Below are positions 6,639 through 24,509 of a stretch of 64,000 bases of DNA, one piece after another. Every line of letters begins with the position of its first letter. The stretch's first letter is position 1. This DNA is from Prasinococcaceae sp. CCMP 1430 (lineage: Eukaryota; Plantae; Prasinodermophyta). The notes under the pieces are model-generated. The model was not told where the DNA came from. It ran no database searches and was given only the letters and a program-made list of their open reading frames with translations. The stretch is taken from contig RQSC01000027.1 of assembly GCA_013416795.1 (NCBI GenBank), positions 652,416-716,415 on the forward strand. Reading direction: 5' to 3'. A program made the translations under genes and the position numbers.

Positions 6639-8622
6639 TCAGTACCTCCCGCGGCCTCCGCGACCGCCGCGACCCCCACGCCCGCCGCGGCCACGGCCGC
6701 GCCCGCGGCGATCGCCTCCACCTCGGCCGCGACCAGCACCGCGTCCGAAAGACTGCCCCTCGCTGCTGCCCCAGTCCTCCTCGCCGGGGTACCGCTGCGG
6801 CCTCTGCCTGCGGGACGTCTGGGGCCGCCACGCGTCCGCGTAGCCCTCGGCCACCTCAGTGCCGCCGTACCCACTGGTCTCGGCACGGTATTCGCCCTCG
6901 ACCTCAGGGCCGCGGCTGCGATACTCACCGCGTCCGCGACCTCCACTGCCGCGCCCTCCGCGCCCTCCGCGCCCTCCGCGCCCGCCCTCGCGCGCGTGCG
7001 CGTTGTAGCTGAGCTGGTCGCCGTATTCGCCCCGGCCACCGCGGCCGCCGCCGCCACCACGACCACGGTCGCGGCCGGCGTACGCTCCCCTTCCGCTGCC
7101 ACGGCCTCCGCGGCCGCGCCCTGCGCGGGCGCCTCCTCTGTAGCCGTACGCAGGATCCGCCTCCGCATCGTCGACCTCGCTGTGGTGCGCGCGCGCACCA
7201 CCACCGCCCGCATTGCGCTGCTCGCGCTGCTGGCGCCGCGCGTCGAGCGCCTCGGCCTTCATCTCGCGCGTGACCTCCTGCAGCTCCCCCTCGCGCAGCA
7301 CGACCTCCATGAAGCGCACGTCGCCGCCGAGCTCGCGCTCGAACTTGTTCACGACGAAGGCCTCCGCCGGGTCGACGATGGTGAGCACGAGCCCCTCGCG
7401 GTTCATGCGCCCCGCGCGCCCAGCGCGGTGCACGTAGTGCCTGCCATCCGCTGGAAGCTCGAGGTTGAAGACGCCGTCGCACTCGGGCACGTCGAGCCCG
7501 CGCGCGCCCACCTCATTCAGCAGCAGCACGTCCACATCGCCGCGGCGGTACTTCGAGAGCGCGTTACCACGCTCTATTTTGTCCATGCCGCCGTGCAGGC
7601 TCACGCAGGACACACCCGCCGCCTGCAGGCGCTGCTCCGCGTCGGGGAGGCGACGCGCGTAATTCATGAAGACAGCCGCGCGCGAGACGCCGCTCGCGCG
7701 GAGGGAGCGCCGAAGCGCGTCATACGCGTGACGTCGCGGCACCACCAGGTACGCGTGCGTCAGATTGGGGGGCAGGCTCTCCCCGAGTCCTGCCTGCGCT
7801 GCGCGCTCGCCAGCACCGACGCTCGCGCCGCCCGCGGCCCCCGGAGCGACGAGCTCGATGTCCGCGTGGCCCGCGGCGGCAGCGGCTTCCAGGGTGCGTT
7901 GCGCCAGCGTGGCGGACACGAGCACGAGTTGCCTGCCTTGGTCGCCCGGCGCGTTCTTGCCAACGTGCGCGAGCAGCCTTCCCATCGGCTCTGCGAAGTT
8001 GTCTGCGGCGAGGTCGTCGGCCTCGTCGAGTACCAGCACGGACGCGCCGTGCGTGCGCAGCGAACCCTCGCGGCTGAGGTCGGCCAGGCGGCCGGGCGTG
8101 CCCACCACGATGAGCGGGCGGTTGGTGCGGAGCGCGTCGATCTGCCTCGGCATCGACGCGCCGCCGATGGCCTGCTGCACCATGCGGTGGCCGTCGTCGC
8201 CCGCGCGGCGCCCGAGCAGGCTCTGCCCCTCACGCACAATCTGCATGGCGAGCTCGCGGCTGGGGGCCACGATGACCGCGTAGGGGCCGCCGTCGCCAGG
8301 CGAGGCACCCTCGCGGGCTGCCTCCGCCGCGGCGGCCAGAGCGCGCGCGACCACCGGCACGAGGTACGCGAGCGTCTTGCCCGAGCCGGTGTAGCTCTTG
8401 ATCGCTACCGAGCGGCCCTCGAGCAGAGCTGGCACACTCTTAGCCTGCACGGGGGAGGGAGAGGGCGCGCCGAGCTCGGCCAGACGCGCGGCCAAGCCCG
8501 CGGGAACGCCCGCCGAAGCCCATGTCGGCGCCTCGCCCGCCGCCTCCCCCGCGCGACCGTCGGCGTCGGCGGTCGCGGACGGCGGCCGCCGCCGTCCGCA
8601 GGGCGCTCGCCCTCGCCGCCAT
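6639..8622 (-). CDS. DEAD-box RNA helicase, plant organellar RH47/ISE1-like, with a long RG/RGG-rich C-terminal tail
   Basis: SYTGSGKTLAYL, IVAPSRELAMQIVRE, VVGTPGRL, VLDEADDL, LVSAT, ARGLD, YVHRAGRAGR. Nearest plausible ATG (8622) is one base out of frame with the body. Confidence 0.85.
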
Positions 8623-8849
8623 GCGTCCCTCGCGAGAGGTGTGCCGCCCTCCGCCGCCGCCTCGGCGAGGGCTTCGGGCGGACAGTTTCGCCCCCGACAA
8701 AAAAAAAAAAAAAAGTTGGGGGGCGCGGCGGCGCACTTGCGATCATACCTGCAACTGAAAAAAAAGACACCCAAAAAGTCCAACCGTTCAGAAGACTGGA
8801 AACGGATTTGAATCCACCTGACCCCGGTCTGATCGAGGCGTGACCGGAG

Positions 8850-11126
8850 ATGCACTGTACGCCTCGAAAGATCCGGGTTATGGAGGGACGGCTGACCGGG
8901 GCAGCTGGGGACGTGTCGAGCGGGTGCGTTCTGATGGCGCAGGGAGGCGGTGGTGGCAGCGTGGCGGACGAGCTGTTGGCAGTCGTCGAGACTGGCGCCG
9001 GCGGCGGGGGCGCGGCGGAGGCGGAGGCGGCGGACGGGAGCAGGGTGTTCGCCACGGTGGCTCTCACGCTGTGTGACCCCTCGCGCGACGGGCTGCGCAA
9101 GGAAGGCCGCGTGTCGGTCACGTTCGGGCGCGCGCCGCTGTGCAGCGCGCGCGCGTCTGCCGGGGGCGGCGCCGCGCTCGCCGATGACGAGCTCGAGGCA
9201 GGCAGGCAGCTCGAGCGCGCGCTGGTGGGCACGGGGGCTGTGGACGTGGAAAGCCTGTGCGAGTGCCCTGGCCGCGCGGCCTGGCGTGTAGATGTTCGCT
9301 GCGCGGTCCTCGACGATGGCGGCGCCGCGCTCGACTGCGCGGCGGCGGCGGCGGCCGCTGCGCTGCTTGCGACGCGCGTGCCGCAGGTCACCGTGGACGA
9401 GGAAGGGGGCGAGGTCACGGTGCACTCTCCCGAGGACAAGGAGCCGCGCGCACTCACCCTCCACCACCTCCCCGTGTGCGCCACCTTTGCCGTGCTGCCG
9501 GTCGATCCGTCGCACAGCAACAGCGGCGGCGGCATCCCGGCACAGGCGGGCGGCAAGGCGGGAGCGGCGGGCGTGTCAGTGGACGAAATGCTGCTTCTGG
9601 ACCCCAGCGTCGAGGAGGAGGCTGCCGCGGCGGCAGGTGGGGCCACCATTACGGTGTTCGTCACCAAGCACGGCGAACTGTGCGGGCTGCGCCAGGCGGG
9701 CGAGCTTGGCGTGCCGCGCGACCTCGTGTCGCGGTGCGTGCGCATCGCGTCCGCGCGCGCCGGGGAGCTCTCGGACGCCATCCGAGAGGCCGCCGAAGAA
9801 CACGCCAAGGCCGAGGTCAAGCGGCGCGTGAGGCGCGCGGCGGACGAGGTGGGCGAGCCGCAGGAACCCTTCGTGGTGGGGTATGTCTGCGCGCCGGGGC
9901 GCGCGCAGTCGCTGCGCGAGCGCGGCCTGCTCGCGGACTGCGACGCGGCGCAAGGACCGGAAGGCGCCCCGGCGCGGGCACACGCACACGCACACGGCCA
10001 GGCGCAGGGCGCAGGGGCCGGGGGAGGCCGCAGCAGCGACGGCGGTGCAGGCAGCGTGCGTTTCCTGGCGCTGACGGAGGCGCGGCGGCGCGGCATTCCA
10101 GTCGCACTGGTGCTGCACAAGCTGTCTGACTTCCTGCACGAGGAGACTTCCGACGGAGCAGCTGCGGCAGTGACGGCGGCAGCTCGATCGCTGAAGAGCG
10201 CCACTCGACTCCGAGTGGCGCCATCGGGAAGTGATGGCTTCTACGCGGTGCGAGGCGAGGTAATGGAAGCGATCGAGGCTGCCCGCGCGCCGCAGCTGGA
10301 CGTTCTCGAGCGCGTAGCTGTAGTGCTCGACCGCGCGGCGCTTCTGGACCTGCTCGCGCGCGGCACCAACGGCAGTGCGCTACCCAAGGGCGTGCGGCTG
10401 CCCCGATGGGGCCACGTGCGCGCGCGGGTGGGCGATGGCGCAGGCTCAGGCGTCCACGTTGACGCGGCCGCAGCTATTGCTGCCGCCGAGGCTGCTGGCG
10501 TGGTCGGCGCCGGCTTGCAAGTATGCATGGTGAAGCCACGCGTGGCCGCTGGCGCGCCCGGAGCACACGCTATCTCGCTGGTGCCCGCGTCGGGGCCCGC
10601 CGGTGCCACTGCGCGCAGTTCTCTCTCGTCGCTGGGGGTTCCGCCCCCCGCAATCGTGCAGGAGTGCGTGCTGCACTCTGGCGTGCTGCACAAGGTGTAT
10701 TGCATCGGTGATGCCACACTGCATGTGCGAAAGGGCTCGTTGCTCAACGCTGCCGTGCGCGCTATCGGCAAGCCCCTCACATTCGACTCGCAGATCAAGG
10801 CGGCGCCCGACAGCGGTGCGATCGAGCGCGTTGGCTCGTCTATCACCTCGATGACGGAGTTATGTGCCATCGATGTGTCACATGCGGAACCGAGCGCGCT
10901 CCCCGCGGACGAGGCCAAGCTGCGCGCGTCGGCGGACGCGTTGCGGCGCGCTCTGGGTCTGACGCTCTTTGGCTTCGATGTGCTCGTCGAGGACGGCACC
11001 GGCGATCATGTAGTCGTCGACGTCAACTACTGGCCCTCGTTCAGCGGTGCTGACATTGGCGACGAGGAGATGGCAAAGCTGTTTCGCCGGGCACTTATCG
11101 GCGCGCACATGAATCGCGTAGAATAA
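8850..11126 (+). CDS. Single 758-aa ORF: exosome subunit RRP45/EXOSC9-like RNase PH domain (~8850-9830) fused to an ITPK4-type inositol phosphate kinase (~9870-11100)
   Basis: RRP45: AVDVESLC..GRAAWRVDVRCAVLDDGGAALD, VTVHSPEDKEPRALTLHHLPVCATFA. ITPK: VVGYV, VLHKLSD, MVKPRVAAG..AHAISLV, IVQECVLHSGVLHKVYCIG, LTLFGFDVLVEDGTGDHVVVDVNYWPSF. Confidence 0.85.
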   Translation: MHCTPRKIRVMEGRLTGAAGDVSSGCVLMAQGGGGGSVADELLAVVETGAGGGGAAEAEAADGSRVFATVALTLCDPSRDGLRKEGRVSVTFGRAPLCSARASAGGGAALADDELEAGRQLERALVGTGAVDVESLCECPGRAAWRVDVRCAVLDDGGAALDCAAAAAAAALLATRVPQVTVDEEGGEVTVHSPEDKEPRALTLHHLPVCATFAVLPVDPSHSNSGGGIPAQAGGKAGAAGVSVDEMLLLDPSVEEEAAAAAGGATITVFVTKHGELCGLRQAGELGVPRDLVSRCVRIASARAGELSDAIREAAEEHAKAEVKRRVRRAADEVGEPQEPFVVGYVCAPGRAQSLRERGLLADCDAAQGPEGAPARAHAHAHGQAQGAGAGGGRSSDGGAGSVRFLALTEARRRGIPVALVLHKLSDFLHEETSDGAAAAVTAAARSLKSATRLRVAPSGSDGFYAVRGEVMEAIEAARAPQLDVLERVAVVLDRAALLDLLARGTNGSALPKGVRLPRWGHVRARVGDGAGSGVHVDAAAAIAAAEAAGVVGAGLQVCMVKPRVAAGAPGAHAISLVPASGPAGATARSSLSSLGVPPPAIVQECVLHSGVLHKVYCIGDATLHVRKGSLLNAAVRAIGKPLTFDSQIKAAPDSGAIERVGSSITSMTELCAIDVSHAEPSALPADEAKLRASADALRRALGLTLFGFDVLVEDGTGDHVVVDVNYWPSFSGADIGDEEMAKLFRRALIGAHMNRVE

Positions 11127-11157
11127 TACATACTAGCGCTAGACACCCGAGCCCTCG

Positions 11158-13580
11158 TCAATACGGCGCGGCGCTGTACTCTCTGTACAAGTCACCCGCG
11201 CGATTGCAGTCGTGGATGCTGCAGTCCCACTTGGGCCGTTTGCATACGAGCCGGTGCCCCCCTTCCTCCCAATCCTTTCGTTGGCACACCGCGTCGCAGT
11301 AGAAGGCGGATTTGCACACCTGCCGTGCGAGCAGAGGACGGTGGGCGCGCAGGATGATGTTAGCTCCACGCCACCAGCAGTCGCGTTTTGGCTGCGGTGA
11401 CTGCACGCGCATGTTGCTGGCCTACGCACTTTGCACCTCTTAGCGTCGAAGAGAAATTTGCCGCATCCCTTCCATGAGCATTGCCTTTCTCTGGCGATCT
11501 CGCGCACGCGGCGAGCGGCCATGGCCTTACGCACGTATCGCAGACTCGTATGCTCCATCACGCTCGTGTAATCCCAGCGCGCCTCACCGACCGCGCCCTG
11601 GCGTTCCGCCTCCCAGTCACGCGTTGGCGGCGGTCGTGGGGGTGCATCGCGAGCAGCGATTTGCTTTGGGCTCTCACCGGTTGCATCGCGGTCGGACTCA
11701 TCGAGTCCTATCTCAACCAAGGCCTGTGGAACAAATGCGCAAGGGCGAAGACGCGCCCATCGCACAAGCGCGCGGTGTCAGCCTGACCGCGCGCAGCAGG
11801 TTTGCACGATGCGCCGCGAGTAGCCGCACGCACACACCCACCCCTCTGCCCCCTGGCCCCACGCGCGCGCCCCCCACGCGCGCACCTTGAACGTGCGCCT
11901 CGCGCCGAACGTGGCAGCGTAGTGCAGCGCGGTGCGCCCGCGAGAGTCTGCGCGGTGCACAGCGCTGGGCCACGCCTCCACGAGCGCCGCGAGCGTCCTT
12001 GGCGCGTCGTGAATAGCTGCGAGCATGTGTGGGGTGCGACCACCGCGCACGGTCGGACATTCGTCAGGGCCGTAACGCTTCGCGTGTATCTCACAGAGCT
12101 TGGCCACCAGCGGGATCGTCTTGGACTCGATTGCGTAGAAGAGTGCCGGCCATCCGGCGGAGTCGTGGTCCCAGGTAGAAACGAGATCTCCCTCGTCTCC
12201 GTCCCTTTCCTTCGCTTGTCTCGCAGCCTGCCCACATGCGAGCGAACGCATCAACGGATTCGCTCCAAGCGCCAGAAGCTCGTCGAAGGCCTCGACGCAG
12301 TTAGGTCCAGCGTAGTGCGCGGCGTAGTGCACAGGCGCGCGCCCGCCGTCGCCATCAGCACGCTGCGCGGGCGTGCGAGCGTGAACATCTGCGCCTGCCT
12401 GCGCGAGGTCACCAAAGCATCCGCTCGCGCCTACGGCAGCCGCAACATGCAGCGGCGTTAGGCCAGCGTCATTGGTCGCGCGAGCGTCCGCGCCGAGCTG
12501 CAGGAGCCAGCGCACGAGCTCCGTGTGGCGGCCCTCCACCGCGCGCATGAGCGGCGTATCACCACCTTCGTCTCGCGCATCGATATTGGCGCCCGCCGCC
12601 GCAAGCTCCTCGGCAACTTCGACATGGCCGCAACGGCAGGCGATATGTAGTGGCGTCGAGCCATGTGGCCCACCCGCGTGGTCGGCACGCGCACCCGCCG
12701 CGAGCAGGGCGCGCGCAACCCCGAGCCGGTCGGCGGCGGCGGCCACATGCAGCGGCGTGCCACGACGCGCCACGTAGAGGCTGGCGCCCGCAGGCACGGC
12801 ACGCTTGAATCCTAGCCTGCGTGCCGTGTTGATTTCTTCCTGGGTCGCACCAGTGGCACGCATGCGCTCCTCAAGGTCGGCGTCGGCGTCGCCGTCACCG
12901 TAGTCGACCGCGTCGACGTCCGCCCAGTTGTCTGCGAGCATCGTGACGACTGCCGCATGGCCGTTGTTCGCCGCGAGATGCAGCGGCGTGAGCAGCTCAG
13001 CGTCGGCCTCGGAGGGGCGTGCCCCAGCCTTGAGGAGCAGGGAGACGCACTGTGGCTCGCCTGCGGCGGCTGCGCAGTGCAGAGCCGTCGAATCAGCGAG
13101 GTCGGTTGCGTCGACGCTCACGCCCTGTGCGAGCAGGTAGCCGACCATGCCGAGGCGCGCGCTCACGCCGGCGCCCGAGCACGTCGCGAGATGCAGGCAT
13201 GTCATGCCGCACGCCGACCTGTCCTCGTCGCGCCACTCGAGCGAAGCCCCCGTGCTGACACAGGTCGCGACATCGGCCACACTGGCGTGCACCCCGATGG
13301 CATTGTGCAACGCCGCGCGCAGCGTGGCGGGCGTCCAGCGAACGACGCGGCCCTTGCCCTCGTCATGCCGCCGGAAGATGTCGGCGTCCTCTCGCTCGAG
13401 CTGCGAGCGCGTACCGAGCAACTCGTCGACGCGCTCCGTCGCCTCGCGTGCCAGCTCCGCGGCCGCTCTCGCCCGCCGCTCCCCCTCGCCGCGTTCCTCG
13501 TGCGCCGGGCCATCTGGATCGTACTCGCGCAGCCGCCACGCCGGCCAGCGCACTCGTCGCGGCGCCACGCGCGACGCCAT
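11158..13580 (-). CDS. Ankyrin-repeat protein with C-terminal MYND zinc finger (3 exons)
   Basis: Multiple TPLH/TALH ankyrin repeats. Introns 11724-11885 and 11320-11429 join to CSWKGC...KRCK|VCKSAFYCDAVCQRKDWEEGGHRLVC (MYND). Confidence 0.85.
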
Positions 13581-13605
13581 CGCAGCCGTGCGCCGGGGCG
13601 AGTGC

Positions 13606-13737
13606 GTGGTGGTCTACCCCGAGGGCACCTGGTACACCTATGTGGACGCAGCCGATATCGACGAGATCGTCGAATCGCACCTCAAGAACGGCCAGGTGGT
13701 GGAACGCCTGGTCACGCCAGCGGAACTTGGTCGCTGA
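13606..13737 (+). pseudogene. 3' fragment of a bacterial thioredoxin-like [2Fe-2S] ferredoxin gene
   Basis: VVVYPEGTWYTYVDAADIDEIVESHLKNGQVVERLVTPAELGR* matches the family C-terminal pattern (vvYPeg.WY..v...D..EIv..Hl..G..VerL). The Cys-containing N-terminal half is absent. Confidence 0.8.
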
Positions 13738-13756
13738 TACGGGCTCCATCCCGCTT

Positions 13757-13822
13757 CGGTTTTTGAATGATTTGGCTGCTTGCGCCTGATGGATAAGCGT
13801 TTGCAGCTATTAATAGAGTAGC
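13757..13822. repeat. Imperfect palindromic intergenic element resembling Comamonadaceae REP-like repeats
   Basis: GATTTGGCTGCTTGCGCCTGATGGATAAGCGTTTGCAGCTATTAATAGAGTAGCA has arms GCTGC..CGC / GCG..GCAGC. The GATAAGCG..GCAGCTAT motif matches my recollection of Acidovorax/Variovorax/Comamonas intergenic repeats. Confidence 0.6.
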
Positions 13823-13828
13823 AATCCC

Positions 13829-13877
13829 GTGAATGCCCAGACCGAACGCCTGACCCTGACCGGCCCCGCAGGCGCCA
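13829..13877 (+). pseudogene. 5' fragment of a bacterial alpha/beta hydrolase gene (GTG start)
   Basis: GTG AAT GCC CAG ACC GAA CGC CTG ACC CTG ACC GGC CCC GCA GGC GCC = MNAQTERLTLTGPAGA, resembling the N-terminus of the hydrolase that I recall follows this ferredoxin in Burkholderiales. Similarity stops abruptly. Confidence 0.6.
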
Positions 13878-15024
13878 ACATTAGATATGCACGCTGGGTG
13901 CCTGCGAAGAAGTTGCTCCATGGATAGATGTCCGAGAGGTTACCCGGGAAGAGTCCTGCAAACGAGCTCCCCGCCCCGGGCCCACCCACAACTCCGCCAC
14001 TCGAGACCAGCGCCGCGCCCCACCGCACTTGCTCGTGGGAAAAATTGGTTAGGGTTATGATTAGGGTTAGACCCCGACAATACAAATTATCGATGCGTGC
14101 ACGCGATCTTTTTTGCACGCCATCAAATGAATCATTGATGGCGGAGGGACCCTGTGCGCGTTGACGCGGGGACCCGCGGCATCGGGCGGGACTCGGACCC
14201 TCGGCGCACCGGTTTTGACGCCAGGACCCGCGGATGGGTGACGGGGGCGCGAGCGCCAGCCCGTCTGCATGCATGCATGCCTGCATGCGAGCCCTCGGGC
14301 CGCCGAGGTCCTCCGGTCGGCCGCCCGCGTGACGCACGACCTTCGTGGTACACACACGGTAGAAGCGCGTGCGCCCATCACACCAGCACCCTGAGGTCGC
14401 CGAGGGAGTCGCAAAGGCGCTTAGCCCTGTCTGTGCAGGCGCAGGCGCCGATTGCGGCAGCAGCGAGTCTCGCGTAACGCCGCTTGCTGATGGCCGCGGC
14501 GCCACGCCTGCGCCTGCTCCTCGACGCGCGAAAAGATACGTGACAGTGCCGCCGCGCGTGCGCTCGCGACCATGTCAGCCGCACACCGGTCAGCACCGGG
14601 ACGGACGCGTGGTACGCACACACGCTCTCACCTCGGGTCGCCGACGAACGAACGATGGTGGCTCACGAACGCCGAGTGACCTCGGAGGGAGCCGCGCGCG
14701 TGGCACACAGTCCGACCGGGGCGTGGGGGGGCGCAGCCGGCGCCGAGCCGAGGTCGCGCGGTCGCGTGGGGGCCGTGGGAGTGCGTCTCCGCGCGGACAA
14801 TGGCAATGTCACGCGATGCGCCGCGTGCGTTTTGATACGAGGAAAATATGAAAAATGGATGGCTTCGGCTTGCCGGGAAAACGCCGCGAGCGTGCGCGCG
14901 CCCGCAGTTACCTGCTGCGATGGCGAGCGCCGCGCCGCGCCGCGCTGACGCGCGGCGCGATCCTCTCCCCGACCTCTTTCCCGTGTGCGCACTACCCCGC
15001 ACGCGCTTGCGCGCGCACCCACAG

Positions 15025-22241: not shown

Positions 22242-24509
22242 TCACTTCGTCGCCTCCATGTAAAACTCGAGCGTGACGGCGGTGTCGGAGTCAGGCTCGA
22301 CAGTGTACGGCGTGGCGGGTGGCACAAGGCGCAGCTGACCCTCTCGCATCTGCACGCCGCCCACCGCGGCGCTGCCCGCCGCCTGCATGATGAAAGTCTC
22401 GCCCGCGTGCGAGACCGTTTGGCCGCCGCCCGCCTTGCGCGTCACCATGCGCCCCTGGAACTCGGCGCCCTTGAAGAGCGGCGCGCGGCCCGCGCTCGTC
22501 GAGCGGGCGTCATCCAGGCAGCCCGCAAGCGAACGCGGCGCCGCCACGTCCACCGCGTCGTCGATCGCCACGGGCGGCACGTCGAGCACCTTGCCCGGCA
22601 CAGCAGCGCCACTCTTGGACGCCTCGGACGCGAAGTACGCCTCGATGACGGGCTTGAGCTCCTTCCCCAAATCCTGGCAGTGCCACCACTCCTCGTACAG
22701 CACCTTGGTGGCGTCGGCGCCCTCGCCGTAGAAGCGCAGGCCGTCGAGTTCTCCCTCCAGGCGCTTGCGCTCCGCCACCAGCCCGATGGTGTGCGCGCCG
22801 CGCTGCGGCGAGTGCGGCACGCGCGCGGGCAGCAGAAAGATCTCGCCTTCGCGGATGGGTATGTCGCGCCGTGCGCCGTGCTCGAGCACCTGGAGCACCA
22901 TGTCGCCCTTGAGCTGGTAGAAGAGCTCCTCGCCCTCGTTGATGTGGAAGTCCTTGCGCCGGTTGGGGCCACCCACAGCCATAACCAGCCAGTCGCCCGC
23001 GCCGTATACCATCGCGTTGCACACGGGCGGCGCGAGTCGCGCGGCGTTCACCCGCGCCCACTCGCCGAAGTGCACCGGGGCGTCCGCCGTCGCCGCCGCC
23101 TCCATCTTGGCGAGCTCCTCCTTGAGCATGAGCACGAAGAGCCTGCAGTCCTCGTAGGTGTTGTACAAAGGCACGGGCGCCACGCGGATGACGTCCGGCT
23201 TGCGCGAGTCGACGACGGCGCCGCGTGCGCGCAGCGCCTTCTGCACGGCGGCGGCATCGCGTCCCTTGATCACCACCGACAGCATCGCACCGCGGCGTGC
23301 CGGGTCCCGCGGCGTGAGCACGTGCACCCTGCTGCTGCCGATCTGCTCCTCGAGCAGCGCCTCCAGATAGGCGGTGAGGCGAATCGACTTGGCGCGGAGG
23401 GCCGCCATGCCAGCCTCATCATGGACGTCGAGCGACGTGCGCAGCGCGACCATGGACAGGGTGTTGGGGTTGGACAGCATGAACGAGTACGCGCCCTCCT
23501 GCGGCACGAACTCGAGGCCCATGTCGAAGCGGTCGGAGCGGCGGTGCCCCCACCAGCCGGCCAGGCGCGGCAGCTCGTCCAGGCTCGCCTTCGCCCAGCG
23601 CTCGTGCACGAAGAGCCCCGCCATGCCGCCCGGGCCGGAGTTGAGGTACTTGTAACTGCACCAACACGCAAAGTCAACGCCGTCATCGTGCAGCGACAGG
23701 TCGACGTTGCCGGCCGCGTGCGCGAGGTCGAAGCCTGCGACGGCGCCCACCGCATGGGCGGCGTCAGAGATGGCCCTGAGGTCGAAGCGCTGACCTGTGT
23801 AGTACTGCAATGCGCCCATCATGACCACCGCGAGCGTTTCTCCGAGCTCCGCTATCTTGGCGAGCACGTCCTCCTCGCGCAGGTGCACCTCGCCCTCGCG
23901 CGGCCACACCCGCACGAGCACATCCTCGTGCTTCAGCCCGTGCAGGCGCGCCTGGCTCTGCAGCGCGTACTCGTCCGATGGAAAGGCCTTGCCCTCCAGC
24001 AGGATGACGCGGCGCGTTTCGGTCGGCCTGTAGAAGGCGCACATGAGTATGTGGAGGTTGGCGGTGAGCGAGTTGCAGCACGCGACCTCAGCGGGCGTCG
24101 CGCCGAGCAGCCGCGCGCACTGCTCGCGCACGGTGTCCTCGATCGTCCACCACGGCGTCGCGCACTCGGCGCGCGACTCGTCGAAGTGCCCCTCAACGCC
24201 CATAGCGGCCCACTGATCCAAATCGGCGTCCACGGCGGCGCGCACGGCCTTTGGCTGCAGCCCGAGCGAGTTCCCACACAGGTACACCAGCCTCTCCGCG
24301 CTCTCGTCGTCGGCGGCAGCCGGGTCGCGCGGCGGCACGGCGTAGCGGGCGCGGAAGCGCGCGAGCGCGTCGGCGGCGTCGAGCGCTGCGGCCAGCTTCA
24401 CGATCCCGGTGGCCGCGCCCGCGCCGACGCCGGCGTCGGCCAGCGCGCCCGCGAGGTGCCCCGCCGCAGGCAGCCTGCGCCAGCCACCCCGTCCCGCCAT
24501 CGTCACCAT
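22242..24509 (-). CDS. KYNU-HAAO: Kynureninase fused to 3-hydroxyanthranilate 3,4-dioxygenase (KYNU-HAAO), single exon
   Basis: KYNU: YLCGNSLGLQPK, AFPSD, DLAHAAGN, WCSYKYLNSGPG, GWWGH, IRVAPVPLYNT. HAAO: PPVCN, VGGPNRRKDFHINEGEELFYQLKGDM, EGEIFLLPARVPHSPQR, ERKRLEGELDGLR. No stop or intron between them. Confidence 0.95.
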   Translation of the reverse strand: MVTMAGRGGWRRLPAAGHLAGALADAGVGAGAATGIVKLAAALDAADALARFRARYAVPPRDPAAADDESAERLVYLCGNSLGLQPKAVRAAVDADLDQWAAMGVEGHFDESRAECATPWWTIEDTVREQCARLLGATPAEVACCNSLTANLHILMCAFYRPTETRRVILLEGKAFPSDEYALQSQARLHGLKHEDVLVRVWPREGEVHLREEDVLAKIAELGETLAVVMMGALQYYTGQRFDLRAISDAAHAVGAVAGFDLAHAAGNVDLSLHDDGVDFACWCSYKYLNSGPGGMAGLFVHERWAKASLDELPRLAGWWGHRRSDRFDMGLEFVPQEGAYSFMLSNPNTLSMVALRTSLDVHDEAGMAALRAKSIRLTAYLEALLEEQIGSSRVHVLTPRDPARRGAMLSVVIKGRDAAAVQKALRARGAVVDSRKPDVIRVAPVPLYNTYEDCRLFVLMLKEELAKMEAAATADAPVHFGEWARVNAARLAPPVCNAMVYGAGDWLVMAVGGPNRRKDFHINEGEELFYQLKGDMVLQVLEHGARRDIPIREGEIFLLPARVPHSPQRGAHTIGLVAERKRLEGELDGLRFYGEGADATKVLYEEWWHCQDLGKELKPVIEAYFASEASKSGAAVPGKVLDVPPVAIDDAVDVAAPRSLAGCLDDARSTSAGRAPLFKGAEFQGRMVTRKAGGGQTVSHAGETFIMQAAGSAAVGGVQMREGQLRLVPPATPYTVEPDSDTAVTLEFYMEATK

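Follow-up and report, generated by a model that had tools for sequence, protein, structure and literature searches.

In the green picoalga Prasinoderma, RRP45, a non-catalytic subunit of the PH ring in the RNA exosome core, and an ITPK-family kinase, closest to ITPK4, form a true, tight, in-frame gene fusion at the level of the DNA, but the spliced messenger RNA that bridges the two halves encodes RRP45 alone. We give an even chance to the locus being an exitron-switched gene, in which spliced mRNA would yield RRP45 by itself and retained mRNA an RRP45-ITPK protein. Such a fusion has not been described before, and although the published annotation of Prasinoderma coloniale contains a model (PRCOL_00003091, 706 aa) that is already fused and carries all three Pfam domains, it has never been discussed: the only fusion named in the genome paper is KYU-HAAO, the RRP45-kinase model being unmentioned (PMC7455551), and a literature search found no link between RRP45 and an inositol kinase.

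The window, that is the whole 64,000-nt stretch of DNA analysed, carries at 8850..11126 (+) an open frame of 758 aa without interruption in the ORF listing, which is 99% identical to the 706-aa model PRCOL_00003091-RA and whose best matches among solved structures are human RRP45 (2e-24) and AtITPK4 (2e-19). A prior reading made from the sequence only had proposed one uninterrupted ORF with two domains and a helical linker; in the DNA both domains were borne out by Pfam and the quoted linker was present, while the first ~48 residues proved to be an artefact (see below). The accompanying caveat that stop codons are rare held for the window at large, where, with a composition at the locus of ~72% GC, long spurious ORFs are common in all frames, but applied less well to the 422 open codons of the kinase frame, for which the chance probability at local base composition is ~2e-4. 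The frame is open over the joint, and the join identical, in four independent DNA assemblies: the window, a separate sequencing of this organism's DNA (run X5), and two Tara scaffolds (L002 and L015) carrying near-identical alleles. The coordinates of the relevant features are collected in Table 1.

Table 1. Features of the RRP45-ITPK locus, numbered from the first letter of the window.
Feature	Position	Strand	Basis
5' leader	8850..8940	+	window and Tara scaffold L002 collinear up to ~8941
Unsupported 51-nt patch	8941..8991	.	independent DNA has ~258 nt there
RRP45 body: RNase_PH, RNase_PH_C, C-terminal helix to ~9839	8992..9839	+	Pfam, PDB alignments
RNase_PH (ORF residues 64-178)	9039-9383	+	Pfam 37.3 bits, above curated cut-off
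RNase_PH_C (ORF residues 244-302)	9579-9755	+	Pfam 32.0 bits, above curated cut-off
Linker of ~10 residues, AADEVGEPQE	9840..9869	+	sequence; alignment A3
Complete ITPK-family kinase domain, N-lobe from FVVGY	9870..11123	+	alignment A3, AF2 model, dN/dS
221-nt intron (candidate exitron)	9881..10101	+	L001; Logan assembly X1; splice signals
TGA ending the RRP45 frame in spliced mRNA (...EPQEPFVVG-RTGAAQAV*)	10127..10129	+	L001 ORF 34..897
First kinase-frame ATG past the junction (MEAIEAARAP...)	10263..10265	+	L001 1031-1894 / P0002
Ins134_P3_kin (ATP-grasp; ORF residues 550-733)	10497-11048	+	Pfam 76.9 bits, cut-off 23
Kinase stop codon	11124-11126	+	sequence

Comparison with independent DNA located a sequence fault at the 5' end of the ORF. 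Tara Oceans scaffold L002, which shares 99.1% identity with the window across 4.6 kb, has ~261 nt in place of the 51 nt at 8941-8991, and a 17.7-kb contig from the X5 run, dated 2024, consists of 8600-8940, 258 other letters, and 8992-11300 with zero mismatches throughout that last interval; window positions 8936-8990 lie inverted on a different X5 contig, and the second Tara scaffold, beginning at 9016, is uninformative for this segment. Because the P. coloniale genome is haploid (PMC11884799), the 258-nt version is ruled out as a second allele. As read in the Tara allele (the 258 letters of X5 being known by length), the replacement piece is 85% GC and holds both the true ATG (MSLEHSRASLG...), a start common to the annotated model (P0001) and P0004, and the motif ARRDGR, which is absent throughout the 64,000-nt window. 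The apparent lack in RRP45 of its first ~30 residues, including R.DGR, had been remarked upon in the sequence-only reading, and is thus attributable to the sequence fault rather than to the gene. L002 places the ATG at 8850 in frame 1, with the main ORF in frame 3; that ATG is not the true start, and opens a different, uORF-like frame overlapping the real one. The first intron predicted for PRCOL_00003091 would remove ARRDGR, and since the transcript contig L001, which starts at 9012, runs through the predicted acceptor at 9042-9043, the model is wrong at its 5' end. Correction is consequently needed both to the published model, whose first intron is spurious and from which the 221-nt intron described below is missing, and to the sequence of the window at 8941-8991.

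Upstream, on the opposite strand (6639-8700), lies a divergent DEAD-box helicase ORF with no in-frame ATG between its conserved Q-motif region and the gap that begins at ~8700; to place its true start requires an intron, a change of frame or, here too, a correction of the sequence. The AT-richer gap of ~160 nt between the helicase and RRP45-ITPK genes contains A(15) at 8700-8714 and A(9) at 8758-8766, and is probably their shared promoter region.

When the protein with its corrected N-terminus was aligned to chains in the PDB, the scores obtained (RRP45, 93.8 bits; RRP43, 52.8; RRP42, 32.6) placed the subunit nearest to RRP45, and not to RRP41, RRP42, RRP43, RRP46 or MTR3. The corrected protein aligns from residue 14-22 onward with the solved chains of Rrp45, Rrp42 and RRP43, and the N-terminal strand with R.DGR is complete once the Tara-allele sequence is used. 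The algal subunit shares with RRP45/EXOSC9 both RNase PH domains, the R.DGR N-terminus and a C-terminal helix that aligns to the human one, but differs in that the helix is followed, in the unspliced frame, by a kinase of 415 residues; in the RRP45 paralogues of human and plants the C-terminal tail is instead disordered. The linker is free of stops and ATGs and leaves no intergenic space, and the kinase starts ~10 residues past the last RRP45 helix.

In an alignment (A3) of plant ITPK4s with green-algal and other ITPKs, and in collinear, sub-threshold HMMER alignments, VGYVCAPGRAQSLRERGLL / VRFLAL / LHKLSD of the algal kinase matched the family motifs VGYxMKPSRE..RG / VxFVPL / LHKxTD. All of the residues K225, H236, Q267, H272, K278, D373, D387 and N389, which are invariant in A3, are present in the algal kinase, while the N-lobe Lys of MKPSR, conserved in the family, is replaced by Ala. 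An AlphaFold (AF2) model of moderate quality (pTM 0.67, pLDDT 63) contained the three-lobe ITPK fold, N-terminal lobe included, and VIA-align matched its residues 1-420 to AtITPK4 (7pup, chain residues 152-484) with a Z of 27.2 over 315 residues, human ITPK1 (3-325) being next at 25.9. Sequence scores ran in the same order (AtITPK4, 76 bits; HsITPK1, 59; ZmITPK1, 50), and the top named hits were plant ITPK4s. Comparison of the algal kinase with P0006, a marine relative 58% identical to it, gave a dN/dS of 0.33 (dS 1.19), a value that denotes purifying selection on the kinase, although the signal could stem mostly from the P0006 lineage. The kinase is apparently active.

AtITPK4 (7PUP) is the best match in both sequence and fold, and it likewise has an unrelated N-terminal domain directly before kinase strand 1: its kinase domain runs from residue 151, after a HAD-like domain some 150 residues long (PMC7614388). 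As the sequence-only reading had held, that domain has been replaced in the alga, with RRP45 in its position ~10 residues before the kinase. The description of the kinase as ITPK4-type is apt by similarity, less so in that the HAD-like domain is absent, as is the Cys320 of ITPK4 (a residue of the central domain, Asp in ITPK1; PMC7614388), whose VACG reads VAAG in the alga. The Arg of the PSR motif (the salt-bridge partner Arg165 of AtITPK4) is kept; further differences are the Lys to Ala replacement in MKPSR and an extra low-complexity loop of 35 residues between helix 1 and strand 2. Between RRP45 M247 and M472 of the 758-aa ORF there is no in-frame ATG, so that the kinase is without a start codon of its own, and the product initiated from the ATG at 10263 would have 287 aa and lack the N-lobe from strand 1 through LHKLSD.

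The sole transcript contig to bridge the joint was L001, an MMETSP contig of 1914 nt running from RRP45 to the kinase stop, which corresponds at 100% identity to 9012-9880 joined to about 10101-11146. The segment thereby skipped is bounded by canonical GT-AG signals (donor GTATGT, CTGAC at -27, acceptor CCAG), and the same 221-nt GT..AG skip was present in a Logan re-assembly (X1) of apparently the same 2015 culture data, at ~33x word depth and with no contig over 9881-10100. RNA over 9780-9900, for which the sequence-only reading had called, does bridge the RRP45-kinase joint, but it is spliced from 9881, and the claim of one ORF spanning both domains stands for the DNA while in the bridging transcript 9881-10101 is dropped and the frame shifts. 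As 221 is not a multiple of 3, splicing takes the RRP45 frame to a stop eight codons after the splice joint, giving a product of ~349 aa with the true N-terminus; an exact look-up of this spliced product in the protein collection did not return it. The segment removed encodes helix 1 of the kinase N-lobe, the low-complexity loop and strand 2, and the motifs VGY..R..RG / VRFLAL / LHKLSD lie partly inside it. No intron-retained RNA was seen in the bridging RNA of one culture library (two assemblies), the RNA evidence over the joint consisting of contigs from that library, which give no isoform ratios; in a marine metatranscriptome both halves are covered, with a gap at 9725-10141. Since the only bridging mRNA encodes RRP45 alone, an exosome-tethered kinase depends on intron-retained mRNA. 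Programmed ribosomal frameshifting on the spliced mRNA was considered and rejected, the product still being without N-lobe helix 1 and strand 2.

Downstream of the kinase stop, and ending within ~30 nt of it, lies a convergent zf-MYND gene (11139-11412, minus strand; 84 aa in the Tara annotation). Because L001 ends at 11146, the 3' ends of the zf-MYND and RRP45-ITPK genes abut or overlap.

For the exitron-switched gene, the mechanism would be as follows. With the intron spliced, the frame shift would produce a stand-alone RRP45 of ~349 aa and leave the kinase sequence as ~1 kb of 3' UTR, so that the spliced mRNA, predominant in the one available library, would supply ordinary RRP45; with the intron retained, the same mRNA would produce a 755-aa RRP45-ITPK protein, which would dock the kinase to the ring of the exosome. 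Retention of the 221 nt in some of the mRNA, followed by translation, is the most economical reading because the kinase is intact, constrained and without its own start. We infer that the retained form would be made and translated, would assemble into the exosome, and would be subject to regulation of its ratio to the spliced form. Counting against the retained form is the fact that the sole bridging RNA, from a single library, is spliced, while the Lys to Ala replacement in MKPSR counts against the exitron-switch reading. A more specific proposal, that under some condition the intron is retained and an inositol-phosphate kinase thereby loaded onto the exosome through RRP45, is doubtful; were it true, such a regulated switch would tie the local synthesis of InsP to the decay or processing of RNA and, as a 'Rosetta-stone' case, would hint that exosome and InsP are linked elsewhere too. 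The obvious candidate for the cue to retention is phosphate status, since ITPK products feed InsP6/PP-InsP phosphate signalling.

One rival takes the locus for two adjacent genes, or for a chimeric assembly, that pass for a single ORF through the scarcity of stop codons at 72% GC. The frequency of long spurious ORFs in all frames of the window would accord with it, but between the two folds there are only ~10 codons, without stop or ATG, the same join recurs in the window, in X5 and in both Tara scaffolds, and a single transcript contig covers the whole stretch between RRP45 and the stop codon of the kinase. This rival is effectively excluded, and the two separate transcripts that the sequence-only reading had named as a refuting outcome were not seen, both halves lying on one contig. 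Unlikely, though one of the two main rivals, is a constitutive intron that leaves RRP45 as the sole protein, with the kinase either an untranslated 3' UTR, recently silenced, or otherwise expressed, from an internal promoter with a non-AUG start or by reinitiation. The one bridging library, with its spliced form only and no intron contig at ~33x, agrees with this, as does the loss of the N-lobe Lys to Ala; however, a frame open for 422 codons (P ~2e-4), the retention of all the invariant catalytic residues and a kinase dN/dS of 0.33 are not what it would lead one to expect, the intron interior encodes the family-conserved helix 1 and strand 2, and the first downstream ATG gives a kinase without its N-lobe.

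The converse proposal, in which the fusion protein is the main product and the spliced contig a minor or condition-specific form favoured by the assemblers by chance, also appears improbable. The annotators, who had a transcriptome of their own, modelled this region as unspliced (P0001), and an intron of 79% GC would be under-represented in Illumina RNA-seq; yet the RRP45 part, at 75% GC, is well covered in X1 despite its composition, two assemblers gave the spliced path only, no X1 contig falls within 9881-10100, and the 5' end of P0001 can be shown to be wrong. We retain the exitron-switched gene as the best explanation, at the even chance given above.

The distribution of the fusion was surveyed in several collections. 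An exhaustive phmmer search with the corrected 755-aa protein against 1.84 billion representative proteins found none scoring on both halves, so that the statement that no such fusion was known holds outside the genus, for a library in which the query's cluster at full length did not appear and whose coverage of close relatives is imperfect. The strong matches were RRP45-only proteins (best 127 bits, 39-41% identity), together with two kinase fragments from the genus Prasinoderma. No large ESM Atlas cluster held both domains; a word search with the whole ORF, in which low-complexity words swamped the candidates, returned only the organism's own annotated protein, and one with the junction-spanning piece P0004:150-545 gave no match. 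A scan of JGI metagenomes with the kinase alignment yielded distant ITPKs only (30-41% identity), one of which, L011, bears the label of a contig from a human-gut metagenome and was left out of the comparison. In the P0006 relative, all five contigs break just upstream of the C-terminal half of the kinase, with the frame still open there, and a zf-MYND gene lies downstream of the kinase as in the window.

Across window positions 8992-11126 the marine alleles of L002 and L015 differ from the culture strain by only 9-10 substitutions in the gene, six of them common to both scaffolds (9404, 9843, 9872, 10316, 10801 and 10838); three of these, at 9404, 10316 and 10801, are also found in the marine metatranscriptome, which indicates that the gene is expressed in the ocean. 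The 99%-identical alleles show 6 non-synonymous and 3 synonymous changes, too few for a test of selection. An apparent frameshift in L015 was rejected as a mutation, being a 10-N scaffold gap. Both Tara scaffolds lose collinearity with the window at 13594, and 13595-14884 (1290 nt) is replaced by 620 nt identical in the two, L002 being collinear again from 14885; an insertion specific to the strain, or a further assembly patch, may account for this segment.

Inositol polyphosphates are cofactors of RNA machines, for example Gle1-Dbp5 and ADAR2. Should the RRP45-ITPK protein be produced, a functional connection of inositol polyphosphates with the exosome would be predicted, and the alga, compact and culturable, would lend itself to a test of it.

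Among the known systems close to this locus are exitrons, which are characterised as canonical introns lying wholly within coding sequence, with cases in Arabidopsis, human and Drosophila Or88a (PMC10990081). As in the exitrons of that account, removal of 9881-10101 changes or abolishes the downstream protein; unlike known exitrons, the segment lies on the seam between two fused proteins, and its splicing leaves a normal, single-domain essential subunit rather than an inactivated gene. A frame-shifting exitron at such a seam would be a way to keep an essential single-domain product and also to encode a fusion. P. coloniale has another lineage-specific in-frame fusion, KYU-HAAO (also written KYNU-HAAO; PMC7455551, Fig. 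6b), which lies at 22242-24509 of the window, ~12 kb from RRP45-ITPK. By way of contrast, whereas KYU-HAAO joins consecutive steps of one pathway, RRP45-ITPK joins functionally unrelated proteins.
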